This document shows, piece by piece, positions 29,830 through 57,046 of a DNA stretch of 64,000 nucleotides. A program made the position numbers and the translations under genes. The notes beneath the pieces were generated by a model. It searched no databases and was not told the DNA's origin. It worked only from the letters and a program-made list of their open reading frames with translations. Position 1 is the first letter of the stretch, and each line of letters begins with the position of its first letter. The stretch lies in sequence record KY555145.1; one strand, 5' to 3'.

Positions 29830-30033
29830 ATGTCGACCCGCATCCAGCCGCATGACCTTCGCCTCCAGTCGGCGATCGCCGACTTCCACGAGCGCAACCT
29901 GATGTGCCCGGAGCCGGACTGCGACTGGGGCGTGATCGAGACCGGGGAAGAGGACCCCGACACCTGCATCCCCATCACCAAGACCTGTCCGGTGTGCGCC
30001 GGCCGGGGCTTCCTGCCGAAGAAGGCCGCCTGA
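29830..30033 (+). CDS. small Zn-finger protein
   Basis: CPEPDC ... CPVC. Confidence 0.65.
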   Translation: MSTRIQPHDLRLQSAIADFHERNLMCPEPDCDWGVIETGEEDPDTCIPITKTCPVCAGRGFLPKKAA

Positions 30034-31091
30034 TGACCGACGTCTACGCCCCCGATCTCTGCATCTACCATGGCAACTGCGCCGACGGGTTCACCGCCGC
30101 CTGGGCGGTCTACCGCCGCTTCGAGGGCGCGGTGCAGTTCCTGCCCGGCGTCTACGGCCGCCAGATCAGCGACGACGTCGTGCTGGGCCGCCACGTCCTG
30201 CTGGTCGACTTCTCCTTCAAGAAGGAGGAGTTGAAGCGCATCGCCCAGATCGCCGCCTCGGTGACCATCATCGACCACCACAAGTCGGCGGCCGAGGACC
30301 TCAAGGACTTCATCGTCTCCGAGGCGCTGATGGACCTGACCCCGGCCGAATACGCCGAACTCTGCCATTTCGCCGGGCGCCTGCCGATCCGCGCCCTGTT
30401 CGACATGGATCGCTCGGGCGCGGGCATGACCTGGGACTTCTTCCACCGCGACACCCCGCGCATGAAGATCATCGACTATGTCGAGGACCGCGACCTGTGG
30501 CGCTTCGACCAGGAAGGCTCGCGCGAGGTCTCGGCCTACATCTTCGCCCACGACTACCGCTTCGACAACTGGGACGCCCTGGCCGGCGAGATCGAGATCG
30601 ACCTCCCGACGGTGATCGCCGCCGGCGCGGCGATCGAGAAGAAGCACCACAAGGACATCGGCGAGCTTCTGCGCCAGACCCAGCGCGAGATGATCATCGG
30701 CGGCTACCGCGTGCCGGTCGCCAACATGCCCTACACCCTGGCCAGCGACGCGGCCAACAAGATGGCCTCCACCCCGCGCGCCGACGGCACCCTGCCGGCC
30801 TTCGCCGCCTGCTACTTCGACAACAACGCCGGCAAGCGGGCCTTCTCGCTGCGGGCGATCGATGGCGGCGCCGACGTCTCGCAGATCGCCAGCCAGTACG
30901 GCGGCGGCGGGCACGCCAAGGCCGCCGGCTTCTCGGCCGACCAGGGCTGGGAGGGCGAGGGCGACGAGGCCTATGACGCGTGGCTGAAGACCAGGGTCGC
31001 CGCCAGCATCGCCGAACTGGAAGCCGGCAAGGGCATCCCCGGCGAACTGGTCGAGGCCGAGTTCGCCAAGCGCCGGGCGGGGACGGCGTGA
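30033..31091 (+). CDS. DHH/DHHA1 phosphoesterase with antitoxin-like C-terminal tail
   Basis: YHGNCADG, VDFS, IDHHKSA, GGGGHAKAAGF. Confidence 0.88.
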   Translation: MTDVYAPDLCIYHGNCADGFTAAWAVYRRFEGAVQFLPGVYGRQISDDVVLGRHVLLVDFSFKKEELKRIAQIAASVTIIDHHKSAAEDLKDFIVSEALMDLTPAEYAELCHFAGRLPIRALFDMDRSGAGMTWDFFHRDTPRMKIIDYVEDRDLWRFDQEGSREVSAYIFAHDYRFDNWDALAGEIEIDLPTVIAAGAAIEKKHHKDIGELLRQTQREMIIGGYRVPVANMPYTLASDAANKMASTPRADGTLPAFAACYFDNNAGKRAFSLRAIDGGADVSQIASQYGGGGHAKAAGFSADQGWEGEGDEAYDAWLKTRVAASIAELEAGKGIPGELVEAEFAKRRAGTA

Positions 31092-52817: not shown

Positions 52818-52893
52818 GTCGGTCTAGCTCATGGGGTAGAGCGGCGGTCTCCAAAACCGCGCGTGGCAGGTTCGAGTCCTGCGACCGGCGCCA
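52818..52893 (+). tRNA. tRNA-Trp(CCA)
   Basis: Cloverleaf, loop CT-CCA-AA, CCA end. Confidence 0.9.
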
Positions 52894-52898
52894 TTTCC

Positions 52899-52973
52899 GC
52901 GTCCATCGTATATGGGTTATTGCTTCGCGTTGCCAACGCGACGAACCGGGTTCGAGTCCCGGTGGACGCTCCA
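52899..52973 (+). tRNA. tRNA-Gly(GCC)
   Basis: Loop TT-GCC-AA, CCA end. Confidence 0.9.
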
Positions 52974-52979
52974 ATTCAT

Positions 52980-53053
52980 GCGGGTATAGCTCAAAGGGAG
53001 AGCTACTGCCTTCCAAGCAGAAGATGCGGGTTCGAGCCCCGCTATCCGCTCCA
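52980..53053 (+). tRNA. tRNA-Gly(TCC)
   Basis: Loop CT-TCC-AA, CCA end. Confidence 0.9.
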
Positions 53054-53074
53054 AATTTTTCTTCCACGACAAGC

Positions 53075-53103
53075 TTGACAGCCGTCGAGTTTTGTGAGAG
53101 CCT
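53075..53103 (+). promoter_or_regulatory. sigma70-type promoter, tRNA operon 1
   Basis: AAATTTTT UP tract, TTGACA, TTGTGAGAGCCT. Confidence 0.65.
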
Positions 53104-53112
53104 TCAACCACT

Positions 53113-53175
53113 ATGACGCACCTCCTGACCCGTTACGAACGCGAGGCCACCGGCCTCGATACCACCACCGCCTAA
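53113..53175 (+). CDS. leader peptide 1 (20 aa)
   Basis: MTHLLTRYEREATGLDTTTA overlapping the terminator hairpin. Confidence 0.6.
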   Translation: MTHLLTRYEREATGLDTTTA

Positions 53176-53202
53176 AAGCGGTTCTGGTAACCGAGGCCTT
53201 TT
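53152..53202 (+). terminator. attenuator terminator 1
   Basis: GGCCTCG/CGAGGCC outer stem, ACCA/TGGT and ACCGC/GCGGT inner stems, TTTT. Confidence 0.6.
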
Positions 53203-53209
53203 GTCATGT

Positions 53210-53287
53210 GGCCCGGTCGTCTAGCGGTTTGCAGGATTCGTGACTTTCAATCACGAGAGCGGAGTTCGAGTCTCCGTCGGGCCTCCA
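53210..53287 (+). tRNA. tRNA-Glu(TTC)
   Basis: Loop CT-TTC-AA, CCA end. Confidence 0.9.
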
Positions 53288-53308
53288 CCCAAAGTCTCCT
53301 CTGAGCTT

Positions 53309-53383
53309 GGTGCGTTCGTATATCGGTCAATACTCCGGATTGTCGATCCGGCAAGAGGGGTTCGATTCCCCTACGCACCGCCA
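53309..53383 (+). tRNA. tRNA-Asp(GTC)
   Basis: Loop TT-GTC-GA, CCA end. Confidence 0.9.
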
Positions 53384-53395
53384 GGGCTCCTCCCT

Positions 53396-53554
53396 ATGCC
53401 TCTTCAGTCGGGTTCGAGCGACGCCGTCGTCTCGCACAACATCGCCAAGCTGATCGACGAAGGCTACTCCAAGGAGCAGGCCGTGGCGATCGCCCTGTCC
53501 CAGGCGCGCAAGCCGCGCCGTCCGAAGGTCTCGCGCGGCTCACGCCGGCGCTGA
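53396..53554 (+). CDS. small basic protein (52 aa)
   Basis: [31 protein letters not shown], recalled phage family. Confidence 0.7.
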
Positions 53555-53623
53555 CCTCGCCTCGCTAAAGCACCCCAGTTCCCGGCCTCGTCGTGAGGCC
53601 GCCTGCGGTCGCGCGAGGCTTCC

Positions 53624-53848
53624 ATGACCTTTCTTGATCTTCGTTCGCAGTCGAGCGCCGCGCTCCTGCGCCATGTGTCTTCCCGATCCCCGATGGCGGA
53701 AGCGGCTCGCACCGAGTTGCTGACCCGAGGCCTCGTCCCGCTCCTCACGCGGCACAACGGCTGGCGCCTCGCCCCGAGCGAGCCCTTTCCGCAGCATCTC
53801 ATCCCGCGCCCCGATCCGCTCGCGAGGTTCACGTGGCGGGCGGGATGA
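53624..53848 (+). CDS. hypothetical protein
   Basis: GAGG RBS, 74 aa. Confidence 0.55.
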   Translation: MTFLDLRSQSSAALLRHVSSRSPMAEAARTELLTRGLVPLLTRHNGWRLAPSEPFPQHLIPRPDPLARFTWRAG

Positions 53849-53868
53849 AGATTTTTCTCACGACATGC

Positions 53869-53897
53869 TTGACATCCGTCTGAAGTTGTGAGAGCCT
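53869..53897 (+). promoter_or_regulatory. sigma70-type promoter, tRNA operon 2
   Basis: TTGACA ... TTGTGAGAGCCT, same design as 53075. Confidence 0.65.
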
Positions 53898-53991
53898 GTC
53901 CAACGTCACGGGTCACGACACTCCTCGTAGTGCAAAAGCGCGATCCTTCGTTATTCCCAGGCCGCCAGCGGGCGGCCGTTCGAGAGTCATC

Positions 53992-54138
53992 ATGTTCGCC
54001 TTGTCGCATAACAGCCTGAGCCTGAAAGCCGCCTCTCCGGCGACGCTTTCGCTTGCGCTGTCTCCGACGGCCGCGACGGCCGCGACGCCCTCGACCAAGC
54101 CGACCCACTCGGCCTCGCACTCGACGGATCACCTCTAG
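53992..54138 (+). CDS. leader peptide 2 (48 aa)
   Basis: MFALSHNSLSLKAASPATLSLALSPTAATAATPSTKPTHSASHSTDHL. Confidence 0.65.
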   Translation: MFALSHNSLSLKAASPATLSLALSPTAATAATPSTKPTHSASHSTDHL

Positions 54139-54203
54139 GGTATCTCGTCTCAGGTGCAGGCCTTGGAGCCGCACCCGCTACCAACATCCTGTTGACCTAG
54201 CGC

Positions 54204-54240
54204 AAGGCGGCTCCCAGCAAGGAGACCGCCTTTTCTTTTT
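54204..54240 (+). terminator. attenuator terminator 2
   Basis: AAGGCGGCTCC/GGAGACCGCCTT then TTCTTTTT. Confidence 0.8.
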
Positions 54241-54252
54241 CGCGTTGATCAT

Positions 54253-54328
54253 CGGGGTGTAGCTCAGTCGGTAGAGCGCTCGGTTCGGGACCGAGAGGCC
54301 GTGGGTTCGAGTCCCGCCACCCAGACCA
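54253..54328 (+). tRNA. tRNA-Pro(CGG)
   Basis: Loop TT-CGG-GA, CCA end. Confidence 0.9.
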
Positions 54329-54335
54329 ACGCCAT

Positions 54336-54410
54336 CGGGATGTAGCTCAGCGGTAGAGCGCGCGGCTGGGGGCCGCGAGGCCGCAGGTTCGAGACCTGCC
54401 ACCCCGACCA
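54336..54410 (+). tRNA. tRNA-Pro(GGG)
   Basis: Loop CT-GGG-GG, CCA end. Confidence 0.88.
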
Positions 54411-54415
54411 ACAAC

Positions 54416-54488
54416 GCTGCTGCGCCTGGATCGGCGCCGGCCCCTTGGTATGGGGAAGTAGAAGGTTCAATTCCTTCCAGCAGCACCA
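54416..54488 (+). tRNA. atypical tRNA-Thr(GGT)
   Basis: Perfect 7-bp acceptor G1-C72/C2-G71, loop TT-GGT-AT, aberrant D-arm. Confidence 0.6.
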
Positions 54489-54493
54489 ACAAC

Positions 54494-54563
54494 GCCGATG
54501 CCTCTAGGAGGACACGTCTTTCGTAATGACGTCAGGTGGGTGCGATCCCCACTTTCGGCTCCA
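54494..54563 (+). tRNA. atypical tRNA-Thr(CGT)
   Basis: GCC/GGC acceptor, ACGTC/GACGT stem, TT-CGT-AA closed by a T.T pair, small D-arm, CCA end. Confidence 0.55.
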
Positions 54564-54600
54564 TCAAGAGATGATCAAGGAGAGATCAGACGAAACAAAT

Positions 54601-54687
54601 GGATGTGTCACCTCAGTGGCGAGAGGACCGGGCTCTTAATCCGGCAGCGAAAGCTCATCGTGGGTTCGAGTCCCACCACATCCTCCA
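54601..54687 (+). tRNA. tRNA-Lys(CTT) with long variable arm
   Basis: Loop CT-CTT-AA; variable arm AGC-GAAA-GCT. Confidence 0.8.
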
Positions 54688-54692
54688 ATAAT

Positions 54693-54783
54693 GCACGAGT
54701 GACCCGAGTGGCGAAGGGCGTCGACTTTTAATAGACTAGGCGTCCGCGCCTCACCGAGGGTTCGAGTCCCTCCTCGTGCTCCA
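54693..54783 (+). tRNA. tRNA-Lys(TTT) with long variable arm
   Basis: Loop CT-TTT-AA; variable arm AGGCG-TCCG-CGCCT. Confidence 0.8.
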
Positions 54784-54789
54784 GGTTGT

Positions 54790-54873
54790 GCGAAAGTGGC
54801 GGAACGGCAGACGCACTGGTCTCAGGTACCAGCGACTTCGGTCATGAGGGTTCGAATCCCTCCTTTCGTACCA
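54790..54873 (+). tRNA. tRNA-Leu(CAG)
   Basis: Class II cloverleaf, CCA end. Confidence 0.9.
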
Positions 54874-54880
54874 ACGACAT

Positions 54881-54965
54881 GCCGGTCTGGCGGAAATGGC
54901 AGACGCAGTGGCTTCAAGTCCCACCGCCTTCGGGCGTCCCGGTTCGAGGCCGGGGACCGGCACCA
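54881..54965 (+). tRNA. tRNA-Leu(CAA)
   Basis: Class II cloverleaf, CCA end. Confidence 0.88.
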
Positions 54966-54970
54966 TTTGA

Positions 54971-55059
54971 TGCGAAGTGGCGGAACTTTGGTAGACGCAC
55001 CGGCATGAGAGGCCGGCGCCCTTCGGGGCGTGAGGGTTCGAGTCCCTTCTTCGCGACCA
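54971..55059 (+). tRNA. tRNA-Leu(GAG)
   Basis: Class II cloverleaf, loop AT-GAG-AG. Confidence 0.88.
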
Positions 55060-55066
55060 ATATAAT

Positions 55067-55138
55067 GCCGGACGGCGCAGGCGCGCGGGGGAGGTTGTGT
55101 CCCTCCTTGGCTCCGATCGTTACGGAGGTTCGGTTCCA
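55067..55138 (+). tRNA. atypical tRNA-His(GTG)
   Basis: GGAGG/CCTCC stem, loop TT-GTG-TC; non-canonical T-loop ATCGTTA. Confidence 0.55.
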
Positions 55139-55142
55139 TTAC

Positions 55143-55213
55143 GGGGTATGCGCAGGGCGCAGGCATCCTTTGCAAGGAAGTCGGGGTGGGTTCGAGTCCC
55201 ACATACTCCACCA
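55143..55213 (+). tRNA. tRNA-Ala(TGC)
   Basis: G3:U70 identity pair, loop TT-TGC-AA. Confidence 0.82.
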
Positions 55214-55217
55214 ACAT

Positions 55218-55305
55218 GGTAGGTTGGCTGAGAGGCCGAAGGCGCCCGTTTCGAAAACGGGAGGACCGCAAGGTTCCGTGGGTTCGAATCCCACACCTAC
55301 CTCCA
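55218..55305 (+). tRNA. tRNA-Ser(CGA)
   Basis: Class II cloverleaf. Confidence 0.9.
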
Positions 55306-55309
55306 ACAT

Positions 55310-55397
55310 GGATGTATGGCTGAGAGGCCGAAGGCGCCCGCTTGGAAAGCGGGTGAACCGCAAGGTTCCGTAGGTTCGAATCCTACTGCATCCGCCA
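55310..55397 (+). tRNA. tRNA-Ser(GGA)
   Basis: Class II cloverleaf. Confidence 0.9.
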
Positions 55398-55401
55398 ATA
55401 T

Positions 55402-55488
55402 GGTAGGTGGTTCCGGCCTGGGGCCGGACCCGGTTGCTAACCGGCCGGAGCCGCAAGGCTTGGGGTTCGATTCCTCCTCCTACCGCCA
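55402..55488 (+). tRNA. tRNA-Ser(GCT)
   Basis: Class II cloverleaf. Confidence 0.85.
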
Positions 55489-55531
55489 CTTCGATGTTGA
55501 CACCCGCAACGCGGCCTGTCATACGTCACGA

Positions 55532-55745
55532 CAGAGCGAACACCCCCCGGCCGGGTTTGTTGTCATACCGGGTCGTCACGCCCCGTCGGGGCTCTAGTAG
55601 CTCTTCGTGTGGAGTTTTCCGCCTCCCTCCCAGACAAGGAGGCGGACCCAACCAACATCGCGATCTCCCGTGATCGTCGGCGACGGGCGCCGTCAGAGAC
55701 CTTTGCCTGCGCGGCTTCGCTGCGGCCCTGGTCTCGTCCCGACCA
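55532..55745 (+). ncRNA. candidate structured small RNA
   Basis: Own promoter (TTGACA 55497, CATACG 55520); several hairpins; no convincing ORF. Confidence 0.4.
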
Positions 55746-55764
55746 AATTTTTTCGTCGTGGTGC

Positions 55765-55793
55765 TTGACACTGCGAAACTGTTCTGCTAGGGT
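55765..55793 (+). promoter_or_regulatory. sigma70-type promoter, tRNA operon 3
   Basis: AAATTTTTT, TTGACA, GCTAGGGT. Confidence 0.7.
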
Positions 55794-55800
55794 TCACGTC

Positions 55801-55899
55801 ATGAGCAAGACCTATCGTCAATTTGTGCGCCAGATTCAGGTCGTCCGGAATATCCGGGCGGGCCGCTCGCGCATGGCTGACGAAGGGTTCCGGGACTAG
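55801..55899 (+). CDS. leader peptide 3 (32 aa)
   Basis: MSKTYRQFVRQIQVVRNIRAGRSRMADEGFRD, nearly leaderless ATG. Confidence 0.7.
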   Translation: MSKTYRQFVRQIQVVRNIRAGRSRMADEGFRD

Positions 55900-55928
55900 G
55901 TCCCACTCCACGTTCAACCAGTTTCGCG

Positions 55929-55960
55929 AAGGCCCGCCTGGACACCCAGGCGGGCCTTTT
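55929..55960 (+). terminator. attenuator terminator 3
   Basis: AAGGCCCGCCTGG/CCAGGCGGGCCTT then TT. Confidence 0.85.
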
Positions 55961-56001
55961 CGCATTTCAGCTTCAGATCACGGAGATCGCCAAACAGACA
56001 C

Positions 56002-56086
56002 GGATGCTTAAAGCTGGAGGGCTCCAGCCGGGGACTGTAAATCCCCTCTCTTCGGAGGAGTGGTTCGATCCCACAAGCATCCACCA
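56002..56086 (+). tRNA. tRNA-Tyr(GTA)
   Basis: Loop CT-GTA-AA, long variable arm. Confidence 0.85.
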
Positions 56087-56091
56087 ACCAC

Positions 56092-56167
56092 GGACTCGTA
56101 GCTCAGCAGGTAGAGCGCCGGCTTGAAACCCCGGAGGTCGGAGGTTCGACTCCTCCCGTTTCCACCA
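56092..56167 (+). tRNA. tRNA-Phe(GAA)
   Basis: Cloverleaf, two acceptor mismatches. Confidence 0.85.
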
Positions 56168-56172
56168 ACAAC

Positions 56173-56248
56173 GCCCGATGAGCCAGATGGGAAGGCGCCG
56201 CCGCGACATGGCGGGATTGAGAAGGTTCGATTCCTTCATCAGGCACCA
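56173..56248 (+). tRNA. tRNA-Val(GAC)
   Basis: Loop GC-GAC-AT. Confidence 0.85.
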
Positions 56249-56250
56249 AT

Positions 56251-56326
56251 GCAAGTGTAGCTCAGTTGGTAGAGCAGCGGACCGATAATCCGCCCGTCCC
56301 TGGTTCGAGTCCAGGCATTTGCACCA
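56251..56326 (+). tRNA. tRNA-Ile(GAT)
   Basis: Loop CC-GAT-AA. Confidence 0.88.
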
Positions 56327-56333
56327 ATTCTGA

Positions 56334-56408
56334 TGTGGCATAGCTCAGGGGTAGAGCGCGCGCTTGATAAGCGTGAGGACGGGGGTTCGAAGCCCTCTGC
56401 CACTACCA
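56334..56408 (+). tRNA. tRNA-Ile(GAT)
   Basis: Loop TT-GAT-AA. Confidence 0.88.
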
Positions 56409-56441
56409 GTTTCCAGGCCGGCGGAGATGCGCCGGACCTGA

Positions 56442-56517
56442 TGGCGTTTAGCATAGTGGGAGTGCAGGGGTGTCACATACCTCGATCGAACTGGTTCGAT
56501 TCCAGTAACGCCAACCA
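56442..56517 (+). tRNA. tRNA-Val(CAC)
   Basis: Loop GT-CAC-AT. Confidence 0.85.
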
Positions 56518-56522
56518 ATCGT

Positions 56523-56596
56523 TGAGGGTTCGTCTAACGGTAGGACGGCTGGGTCTGGTCCAGCTAATCTAGGTTCGAGTCCTAGCCCCTCATCCA
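56523..56596 (+). tRNA. tRNA-Gln(CTG)
   Basis: Loop GT-CTG-GT. Confidence 0.87.
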
Positions 56597-56604
56597 AATA
56601 CTGT

Positions 56605-56680
56605 TCAGGGTTAGTTTAGCTGGTAAAACACTGGGTTTTGGCCCCGGCGTCGCTAGGTTCGAAGCCTGCACCCTGATCCA
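56605..56680 (+). tRNA. tRNA-Gln(TTG)
   Basis: Loop TT-TTG-GC. Confidence 0.85.
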
Positions 56681-56691
56681 TTTGAGTTTAT

Positions 56692-56766
56692 TCCAGTCAA
56701 TGCACAAGGTGTGCAGCGGCACTGTTAATGCCTGTGAGCCCGGTTCGATTCCGGGGTCTGGAGCCA
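56692..56766 (+). tRNA. tRNA-Asn(GTT)
   Basis: Loop CT-GTT-AA. Confidence 0.87.
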
Positions 56767-56792
56767 ACACGCCGGCCGAGGCCGGCACAAGC

Positions 56793-56875
56793 GCCCTGGT
56801 AACCGAGGGGGACTACGAATCCCTTAGTCGTAGCAGGAGTTGAAAAGGGTGGTTCGAATCCACTCCAGGGTGCCA
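56793..56875 (+). tRNA. atypical tRNA-Arg(ACG)-like, D-arm-less
   Basis: 7-bp acceptor, GGGGA/TCCCT with loop CT-ACG-AA, canonical T-loop, CCA end. Confidence 0.5.
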
Positions 56876-56882
56876 AATTCAT

Positions 56883-56965
56883 AGCGCGCAGGCCGAGCAG
56901 GATCATCGTCAGGCGTCGCCCTCCGAAGGCGAAGAGGCCCGGTTCGAGTCCGGGGCGCGCTGCCA
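56883..56965 (+). tRNA. tRNA-Arg(CCG) with enlarged D-loop
   Basis: Loop CT-CCG-AA; 17-nt D-loop. Confidence 0.8.
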
Positions 56966-56968
56966 TTC

Positions 56969-57046
56969 GCGCAGGTAGCTCAACGGACCCAGAGCGACCG
57001 TCTTCTACACGGAGGGTTGGGGGTTCGAATCCCTCCCTGCGCGCCA
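56969..57046 (+). tRNA. tRNA-Arg(TCT)
   Basis: Loop CT-TCT-AC. Confidence 0.9.

Follow-up and report, generated by a model that had tools for sequence, protein, structure and literature searches.

We analyzed a stretch of 64,000 nucleotides (nt) of sequence record KY555145.1, referred to here as the window, from the Caulobacter phage Ccr29, a phiCbK-like siphophage of the Dolichocephalovirinae. Its array of transfer RNA (tRNA) genes includes 2 neighboring genes with lysine (Lys) anticodons, Lys(CUU) and Lys(UUU) (Table 1). Both have a long variable arm and a U at the discriminator position (U73), as the original prediction for this DNA had noted, and ARAGORN, Rfam, the structures, and a direct reading of the sequence all confirm these features. 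According to textbooks, long variable arms occur only in Leu, Ser, and, in bacteria, Tyr tRNAs. We find that the 2 genes are part of a large, conserved, covarying, and widespread class of phage tRNAs that breaks this rule, chiefly with Lys, Asn, Thr(UGU), Ile(UAU), and Met species, and they are of interest chiefly as the visible tip of that class. Judging from sequence, we regard it as an even call that both are working Lys tRNAs in a phage-specific format, with the arm setting them apart from the tRNA-Lys of the host.

The Lys tRNA genes of Ccr29 and their relatives

Both genes score above the curated gathering threshold of the Rfam tRNA model RF00005 (29 bits), with 51.5 bits for Lys(CUU) (E 3.5e-9) and 36.8 bits for Lys(UUU) (E 4e-5), well beyond what chance would give. 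ARAGORN, Rfam, and the annotation reveal neither a short-arm Lys tRNA nor any third Lys tRNA among the 25 genes of the array. The KY555145 annotation labels the first gene tRNA-Lys-CTT but the second "tRNA-Ser", the phiCbK annotation has the UUU gene as tRNA-Lys (AAA), and the records of several relatives leave it out—i.e. the same gene is Lys in one record, Ser in another, and unannotated in several more.

Table 1. Positions of the Lys tRNA genes and of their diagnostic parts in the window
Feature	Coordinates	Strand	Evidence and details
tRNA array with both Lys genes	52818..57046	+	25 ARAGORN calls, all on the + strand
tRNA-Lys(CUU), 87 nt, long variable arm, U73, encoded CCA	54601..54687	+	ARAGORN, Rfam
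Lys(CUU) anticodon CTT	54635..54637	+	ARAGORN position 35; 7-nt loop 54633-54639
Lys(CUU) variable region, 15 nt	54645..54659	+	1-nt spacer, 3-bp stem closed by GAAA (54646-54655), 4-nt CATC
Lys(CUU) discriminator U73	54684..54684	+	Read from the sequence; then CCA 54685-54687
tRNA-Lys(UUU), 91 nt, long variable arm, U73, encoded CCA	54693..54783	+	ARAGORN, Rfam
Lys(UUU) anticodon TTT	54727..54729	+	ARAGORN position 35; loop 54725-54731
Lys(UUU) variable region, 19 nt	54737..54755	+	1-nt spacer, 5-bp stem closed by TCCG (54738-54751), 4-nt CACC
Lys(UUU) discriminator U73	54780..54780	+	Read from the sequence; then CCA 54781-54783

Each tRNA has an acceptor stem of 7 base pairs (bp), 5-bp anticodon and T stems, the usual T loop, G18-G19 in the D loop, and a 7-nt anticodon loop with U33 and A37 (CTCTTAA and CTTTTAA). 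Both variable regions hold a hairpin, and their lengths exceed the class I format (4–5 nt) as well as the class II minimum (10 nt, with a stem-loop). The D arm has a 4-bp stem and an 8-nt loop, like that of ordinary tRNAs, with a 3-nt 7/10 connector in Lys(CUU), and a 3-bp stem with a 10-nt loop in Lys(UUU). The linker between the acceptor and D stems is 3 bases long instead of 2 if A14 is placed in register. Ccr29's own Leu and Ser tRNAs have 3-bp D stems, 10–11-nt D loops, and 0–2 bases 3' of the arm.

A sensitive DNA search with both genes found them in 23 phage records, at 93.6–100% identity. Among Caulobacter phages the UUU gene is better conserved than the CUU gene. CcrBL10 and BL57 retain the UUU gene only, and phages of Brevundimonas the CUU gene only. 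When Ccr29 is compared with CcrRogue and with the Brevundimonas phages Gurke and Kikimora, compensatory changes are seen in the acceptor, anticodon, and arm stems. The arm itself also varies; CcrRogue and CcrBL10 have a 4-bp arm stem with a different loop in Lys(UUU). CcrColossus carries a 90-nt Lys(CUU), likewise with U73.

Lys(CUU) has the five-arm cloverleaf as its minimum-energy fold. For Lys(UUU) of Ccr29, the cloverleaf (−28.9 kcal/mol) lies about 7 kcal/mol above the minimum (−36.2 kcal/mol), and in phiCbK, where the anticodon stem is fully paired, it comes within 1 kcal/mol of it (−34.9 vs −35.9 kcal/mol). The copy found in Ccr29, Ccr2, and Ccr10 leaves one anticodon-stem position unpaired, and this stem is weakened in Ccr29. 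Such a mismatch, the poor fold of the UUU copy, and the pseudo flag that several array members carry in GenBank would fit RNAs without a role in translation, whether as decoys or sponges that occupy host factors binding tRNA or as pseudogenes in decay. A decoy role has a parallel in overexpressed viral tRNAs, which possibly inhibit AriB, a nuclease of the PARIS defense, by competition (PMC12409363). However, both genes keep U33, A37, G18-G19 and the T-loop motifs, the 7/5 stems, and an encoded CCA, with compensatory changes in all stems and a minimum-energy cloverleaf for the CUU species, and we consider a role outside translation very improbable.

A widespread class of long-arm phage tRNAs

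The long-arm format spans unrelated phages of alpha- and gammaproteobacteria, huge phages, and more than 150 contigs of the IMG/VR database. Long Lys tRNAs, of 82–91 nt, are found in huge phages and in those that infect Brevundimonas, Rhodobacter, Ruegeria, Mesorhizobium, and Xanthomonas. The sensitive DNA search recovered them from Rhodobacter phage RcXuper, Roseobacter phage DSS3P8, Ruegeria phage V10, and 2 huge uncultured phages. The Mesorhizobium phage Cp1R7A-A1 carries 2 long Lys tRNAs and a long Asn tRNA, and Xanthomonas phages XacN1 and X1 carry a long Lys tRNA alongside a normal one. Long Asn tRNAs occur in phages of Erwinia, Mesorhizobium, and Xanthomonas. The survey of related phages that the original prediction called for shows the arm to recur both in relatives of Ccr29 and in phages unrelated to it. 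The class is apparently undescribed: full-text literature searching turned up no account of long-arm phage tRNAs for Lys or Asn, and the phiCbK genome paper, which lists the tRNAs, makes no remark on their structure.

Two pattern scans of IMG/VR gave a broader view. The first, for an NTT anticodon loop followed by a GAAA hairpin and then a T arm, matched at least 120 contigs, and 54 of the contigs listed carry at least one tRNA that is 80 nt or longer and has an isotype other than Leu, Ser, or Tyr. Among the matches listed, the long tRNAs comprise 32 Asn, 17 Lys(UUU), and 7 Lys(CUU), with Met, Ile(UAU), Thr(UGU), Pro, Trp, His, and Cys as by-catch. In the second scan, the anticodon was left free and GAAA, 3–5 bases, CAYC, and a fixed T arm were required; its 113 contigs yielded Lys (27), Thr(UGU) (16), Met (9), Cys (6), Asn (4), Trp (4), and Gly (4). 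The same scan also returned 22 Ser(UGA) tRNAs, which we excluded from the family because their CAYC letters lie within a normal 5-bp Ser arm. Arrays that hold one long-arm tRNA often hold several.

Four prophage ends in IMG/VR (L276, L321, L334, and L351) carry a truncated long-arm tRNA, its 3' half, with anticodon CAT; another locus has a full 88-nt copy (L261:3886-3973). This tRNA appears to mark an integration site, in which case cellular chromosomes may contain a long-arm tRNA(CAU). Two metagenome-assembled genomes contain phage-like arrays, which are probably prophages. One, from Hyphomicrobiaceae (L154, 1158-5250), has 21 tRNAs, including a Lys tRNA with U73, a class-II-like D arm, and a short variable loop; the other, from Rickettsiales (L193, 2047-3114), has 10, including a Lys tRNA with U73 and an 84-nt armed Met(CAT). 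Finally, phage arrays on 2 further IMG/VR contigs (L275 and L326) include 92-nt long-arm tRNAs with the amber-reading anticodon CTA and A73.

The arm has a geometry of its own. In 105 long-arm tRNAs of class I isotypes it consists of 1 base, a 3–4-bp stem, a tetraloop, and a spacer of 3–4 bases, most often CACC or CATC. By contrast, the arm stems of same-array Leu, Ser, and Tyr tRNAs measure 4–6 bp, and the spacer 0–1 base. The same-array comparison of Lys with Ser alone gives 3–4 bp and a 3–4-nt 3' spacer against 5–6 bp and 0–1 nt. We examined pairing in a MAFFT alignment of 41 phage tRNAs that had been selected solely for a 15-nt variable region, of which 27 share the layout 1-3-4-3-4. The arm stem is 91% paired, with 4–6 pair types per position, and both-sided changes affect its 3 pairs in 17, 20, and 10 sequences; none of the shuffled and slid controls came near these values. 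These patterns argue that the arm is under structural selection. For 40 long-arm Lys tRNAs, MAFFT misaligned arms of unequal length, and RNAalifold consequently missed the arm stem; the equal-length set was used instead. We also rejected the arm as a removable intron, as the hairpin covaries like a structural helix; the bacterial tRNA introns known to us are group I introns in the anticodon loop, not 10–14-nt hairpins of the variable region.

In many members of the family, the D arm also departs from that of ordinary tRNAs. A 3-bp D stem is present in 54% of the long-arm family and in 24% of short tRNAs, the commonest D-loop length in the family is 11 nt, and 43% of its members have G9. These class-II-like D arms, found in many members, make "class II format" a fair description of the family. 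The Leu/Ser/Tyr-like scaffold that had been proposed for the 2 Ccr29 tRNAs is not, because arm geometry, discriminators, and acceptor stems follow the isotype instead. Specifically, the family resembles canonical bacterial Ser, Leu, and Tyr tRNAs in having a variable stem-loop and, in many members, the 3-bp D stem, 11-nt D loop, and G9. It differs in the 3–4-bp arm stem, in the 3–4-nt 3' spacer where canonical forms have 0–2 nt, in a distinct D-loop motif, and in having the anticodon, acceptor stem, and discriminator of other amino acids. The D-loop motif, GG(N)YCGA, is common to several isotypes and occurs in 32% of long-arm tRNAs, 1% of short ones, and 7% of Leu, Ser, and Tyr tRNAs. In addition, long-arm Lys and Asn tRNAs of unrelated phages match at 76–87% over the anticodon, variable, and T arms, which together with the common motif suggests common descent or exchange.

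Discriminator bases, charging, and the meaning of AAG

For most isotypes, the discriminator (N73) is the same in long and short forms: Trp has G, Met A, Ile A, Cys U, Gly U, His C, Pro A, and Thr U or A, and G73 is found in 35/37 long and 44/49 short Asn tRNAs. Long forms also have isotype-typical acceptor stems, such as GCC/GGC in Thr and C1-A72 in some Met tRNAs. Such isotype-matched discriminators and stems are expected under cognate charging and would not result from a common Ser chassis.

Lys is the exception. Short phage Lys tRNAs have A73, the usual bacterial tRNA-Lys discriminator, in 107 of 112 cases and U73 in 3, and the 61 long-arm Lys tRNAs divide into 38 with A73 and 23 with U73. 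Both Ccr29 Lys tRNAs belong to the latter group, and in this they also differ from the Leu (all) and Tyr (nearly all) tRNAs of these arrays, which carry A73. Among named phages, U73 long-arm Lys tRNAs are restricted to those of Caulobacter, Brevundimonas, and Mesorhizobium; long-arm Lys tRNAs of Xanthomonas phages have A73, as do those of Rhodobacterales phages, which also infect hosts with a class I lysyl-tRNA synthetase (LysRS1). Caulobacter and Mesorhizobium use LysRS1, and Xanthomonas, like other gammaproteobacteria, uses a class II enzyme (PMC1475646); for Brevundimonas we assume LysRS1. The class I enzyme has U35 and U36 as determinants, with a marginal role for N73 (PMC9976931), and the YUU anticodons of both Ccr29 tRNAs contain these main LysRS determinants. 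U73 is best read as tolerated under LysRS1, because this enzyme would read U35 and U36 and barely position 73. On chromosomes, tRNA-Lys genes of ordinary length with U73 come mostly from Saccharibacteria and Chloroflexota, with about 10 alphaproteobacterial genomes among the 120 matches listed; there is none from Caulobacter among the matches listed in this genome scan.

The original prediction had also raised adaptation to the class I LysRS of alphaproteobacteria. This accounts for the tolerance of U73, but the arm is left unexplained by it, given the A73 long-arm Lys tRNAs in Xanthomonas phages. Many carriers of the arm do infect hosts with LysRS1. Moreover, the variable region faces away from a class I synthetase as it docks on the tRNA, so an arm should do no harm. 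The same arm, however, is shared by Lys tRNAs from Xanthomonas phages and by Asn, Thr, Met, Trp, and Cys tRNAs from Erwinia phages and many uncultured ones, for which the synthetases are unrelated to LysRS1. The distribution largely refutes the arm itself as an adaptation to LysRS1, which we find scarcely credible.

Charging with serine is another alternative, under which seryl-tRNA synthetase (SerRS), reading mainly the long arm and ignoring the anticodon, would charge one or both tRNAs, and some Lys codons would be read as Ser, an ambiguous decoding of the kind put forward for allo-tRNAs and nev-tRNAs. Lys(CUU) has the pairs G1-C72, G2-C71, A3-U70, and C11-G24—i.e. it starts GGA.../...UCC like 82 phage Ser tRNAs—and in combination with the long arm and U73 these resemble a Ser identity set, a long arm with G73 or U73 having been taken as Ser identity in allo-tRNAs (PMC5389517). 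U73 replaces the usual G73 in 28/118 phage Ser tRNAs, including Ccr29's own tRNA-Ser(CGA) (55218-55305, + strand), and the enrichment of U73 among long-arm Lys tRNAs points in the same direction.

Other features argue against serine. The Lys arm, with its short stem and 4-nt 3' spacer, is not built like the arm of same-array Ser tRNAs, one architecture is common to U73 and A73 long-arm Lys tRNAs, and the remaining long-arm isotypes bear their own, non-Ser discriminators (A, U, and C). In Lys(UUU), C2-G71 is an antideterminant for Escherichia coli SerRS (PMC9976931). We also looked at the meaning of AAG in one gene, a DHH phosphoesterase (30033-31091), using its 12 AAG columns in an alignment with 115 homologues at no more than 57% identity. 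These columns contain 41% Lys and 20% Arg, 4 of them are at least 97% Lys, and Ser is outside the top 5 residues; Lys or Arg, never mainly Ser, thus stands at AAG in these distant homologues. Given this alignment with Lys, AAG means Lys in Ccr29 as far as this one gene tells, and systematic recoding is unsupported. The mischarging that had been suggested as a way to recode Lys codons is disfavored as a result, and we hold serine charging to be improbable, although the CUU species may be serylated at a low level. The earlier interpretation as a whole is partly supported.

Long arms on tRNAs with unexpected anticodons have been reported in other settings, and allo-tRNAs and nematode nev-tRNAs are the nearest structural analogues. 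Allo-tRNAs and (8/4) tRNA-Ser/His, from bacteria and alphaproteobacterial phages (Mukai et al. 2017, PMC5389517), share with the Ccr29 Lys tRNAs the long arm, a non-Ser anticodon, U73 or G73, and an occurrence in phage clusters. However, allo-tRNAs have an acceptor/T branch of 8/4 or 9/3, a long D stem capped by a tetraloop, and Ser identity (PMC5389517), whereas the Ccr29 Lys tRNAs have a 7/5 branch and ordinary D arms, and discriminators follow the anticodon isotype. Nematode nev-tRNAs and other eukaryotic tRNAs with a noncanonical variable arm likewise join the class II format to class I anticodons (Gly CCC and Ile UAU), but nev-tRNAs have Leu identity and are leucylated in vitro (PMC4300185); Ccr29-type tRNAs carry cognate marks and belong to another domain of life and another genomic setting.

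A tRNA-like gene that fits the (8/4) tRNA-Ser of alphaproteobacterial phages (Mukai et al. 2017, PMC5389517) lies in the Ccr29 array itself, unannotated, directly after Ser(GGA) and 620 bases downstream of the Lys genes (55402-55487, + strand). Its anticodon is GCT (Ser AGY). The D stem has 6 bp and a short loop, the acceptor stem 8 bp with one U-U, and the T stem 4 bp, and the gene also has a long arm, G73, and CCA; the 8/4 structure was read by eye. ARAGORN and GenBank missed it, and it scores 44 bits with the Rfam tRNA-Sec model (threshold 47).

A possible shielding role for the arm

If the 2 genes encode working Lys tRNAs, these would read AAG and AAA, and the host class I LysRS would most likely charge both with lysine. 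The phage format would retain the tRNA's own anticodon and acceptor stem, as well as the discriminator if the synthetase reads it, and would add a short variable-region hairpin and then a 3–4-nt CAYC spacer, usually with a D arm enlarged as in class II. The arm would make the phage tRNA structurally unlike the tRNA-Lys of the host. Because the hairpin is expected to project beside the 3' strand of the anticodon stem, where nucleases that disable host tRNA-Lys during infection cut or bind, such enzymes may be unable to dock on the armed tRNA, and the supply of Lys-tRNA would be kept. We tentatively suggest a shield against tRNA-cutting defense nucleases as the most likely benefit of the arm; evasion of tRNA-Lys-specific nucleases was among the options raised in the original prediction, and of these we find it the most attractive.

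The best comparison is with PARIS, whose nuclease AriB cleaves between positions 40 and 41 of Lys(UUU), Thr(UGU), and Asn(GUU) and is modeled as a dimer that reaches from the cut site to D-loop positions 16–17 (PMC12409363). An arm that leaves the tRNA body between the D arm and the 3' strand of the anticodon stem, as the variable arm does, would lie in the modeled path of AriB. Several patterns are consistent with a shield. Lys, Asn, and Thr are the best-represented isotypes of the class, and armed Thr tRNAs are exclusively UGU (5/39 and 6/31 in 2 sets, compared with 0/33 and 0/32 for GGU plus CGU). In addition, the sequence U36AAUC, a site that phage T5 needed to change, is kept in 43/61 long-arm Lys tRNAs but in only 33/112 short ones; by species, the counts are 23/24 long vs 14/46 short for CUU and 20/37 vs 19/66 for UUU. 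In Lys(CUU) of Ccr29, U36AAUC is followed by C41, which gives the same 6 bases as the weakly cleaved E. coli tRNA-Asn site, with none of the changes seen in T5.

The T5 tRNAs that neutralize PARIS are the closest functional analogue. They are phage copies of isoacceptors that a host nuclease destroys, namely Lys, Thr(UGU), and Asn, the same species that dominate the long-arm class and that include the Lys isotype of the Ccr29 tRNAs, and theirs too is a function that codon supply does not explain. However, they are ordinary class I tRNAs that evade the nuclease through base changes at positions 39, 41, and 16 (PMC11464382, PMC12409363), whereas Ccr29-type tRNAs keep U36AAUC and add an arm. Mycobacteriophage tRNAs have likewise been proposed to differ from host tRNAs where host nucleases recognize them, but there the anticodon-loop sequence is changed, as a means to evade tRNA-targeting toxins (PMC10264068), and in Ccr29-type tRNAs a structural arm is added.

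Codon use gives a further view of why these genes are kept. Across 14 annotated genes between 2596 and 50993 (7542 codons), AAG occurs 178 times, AAA 6 times, and ACA 5 times. As AAA is nearly unused, codon supply cannot explain the retention of the Lys(UUU) gene. Ccr29 also has no tRNA for the common codons AAC (Asn) or TAC/TAT (Tyr), and with rare codons served and these common ones unserved, the tRNA set does not simply follow codon demand. In the vicinity of the array, to which this search was confined, neither the annotation nor the phiCbK genome paper lists a gene for tRNA repair or charging. We know of no tRNA nuclease in Caulobacter.

Several points weigh against working Lys tRNAs with a shielding arm. 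The serine-like stem pairs and U73 of Lys(CUU), the U73 of Ccr29's own Ser(CGA), and the weakened anticodon stem of the UUU copy have been described above. The motif and isotype statistics come from related sequences that were gathered by pattern and are not independent samples. That the phage tRNAs differ from those of the host rests on the general rule that bacterial tRNA-Lys is class I. Finally, the arm is also present on Ile(UAU) (10/16 in one set), Met, Trp, Cys, and Pro tRNAs, which, to our knowledge, no single known nuclease jointly targets.

This spread over isotypes is also what a tolerated neutral variant would produce, if the arm had one or a few origins in phage arrays, was passed on by inheritance and gene exchange, and does no more than leave translation unharmed, with its pairing kept only against misfolding. 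The clustering of several long-arm tRNAs in one array, the D-loop motif found across isotypes, and the matches between Lys and Asn tRNAs of unrelated phages are all consistent with such a history. On the other hand, the arm persists with covariation across very distant phages and hosts, and its choice of isoacceptors is not random: it is found on Thr UGU but not on GGU or CGU, on Ile UAU but not on GAU, and on none of Phe, Gln, or Arg, nor, in one array set, His. Lys(UUU), moreover, is kept in a genome nearly without AAA codons. We regard neutrality as rather unlikely, and more of a contender than charging with serine.

A shield, if it is the function of the arm, may extend beyond Lys. It is possible, if doubtful, that phages of many host groups carry "armored" tRNAs—i.e. 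class-II-format, cognately charged versions of the isoacceptors that defenses target (Lys, Thr-UGU, Asn, and others)—in which the hairpin acts as a steric shield. An arm that blocks tRNA-targeting nucleases would be a second, structural route past defenses such as PARIS, besides the point mutations of T5, and would explain why phages retain tRNAs for hardly used codons. If serine is attached to some of these tRNAs instead, infection would come with a natural source of ambiguous decoding. The class would also offer natural examples of synthetases other than those for Leu, Ser, and Tyr that tolerate an extra arm, which is useful for tRNA engineering.

Several other members of the Ccr29 array appear aberrant or decayed. 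Between Thr(GGT) and Lys(CTT) lies a tRNA-like remnant (54494-54570, + strand) that begins with a GCC... acceptor strand, ends in TCCA, and has a seemingly oversized anticodon loop; neither ARAGORN nor Rfam calls it. Ala(TGC) (55143-55213, + strand) reaches 23 bits with Rfam, under the threshold, and Ile(AAT) (56692-56766, + strand) is called by ARAGORN only and is followed by a weak tRNA-Sec-like match of 25 bits (56792-56872).

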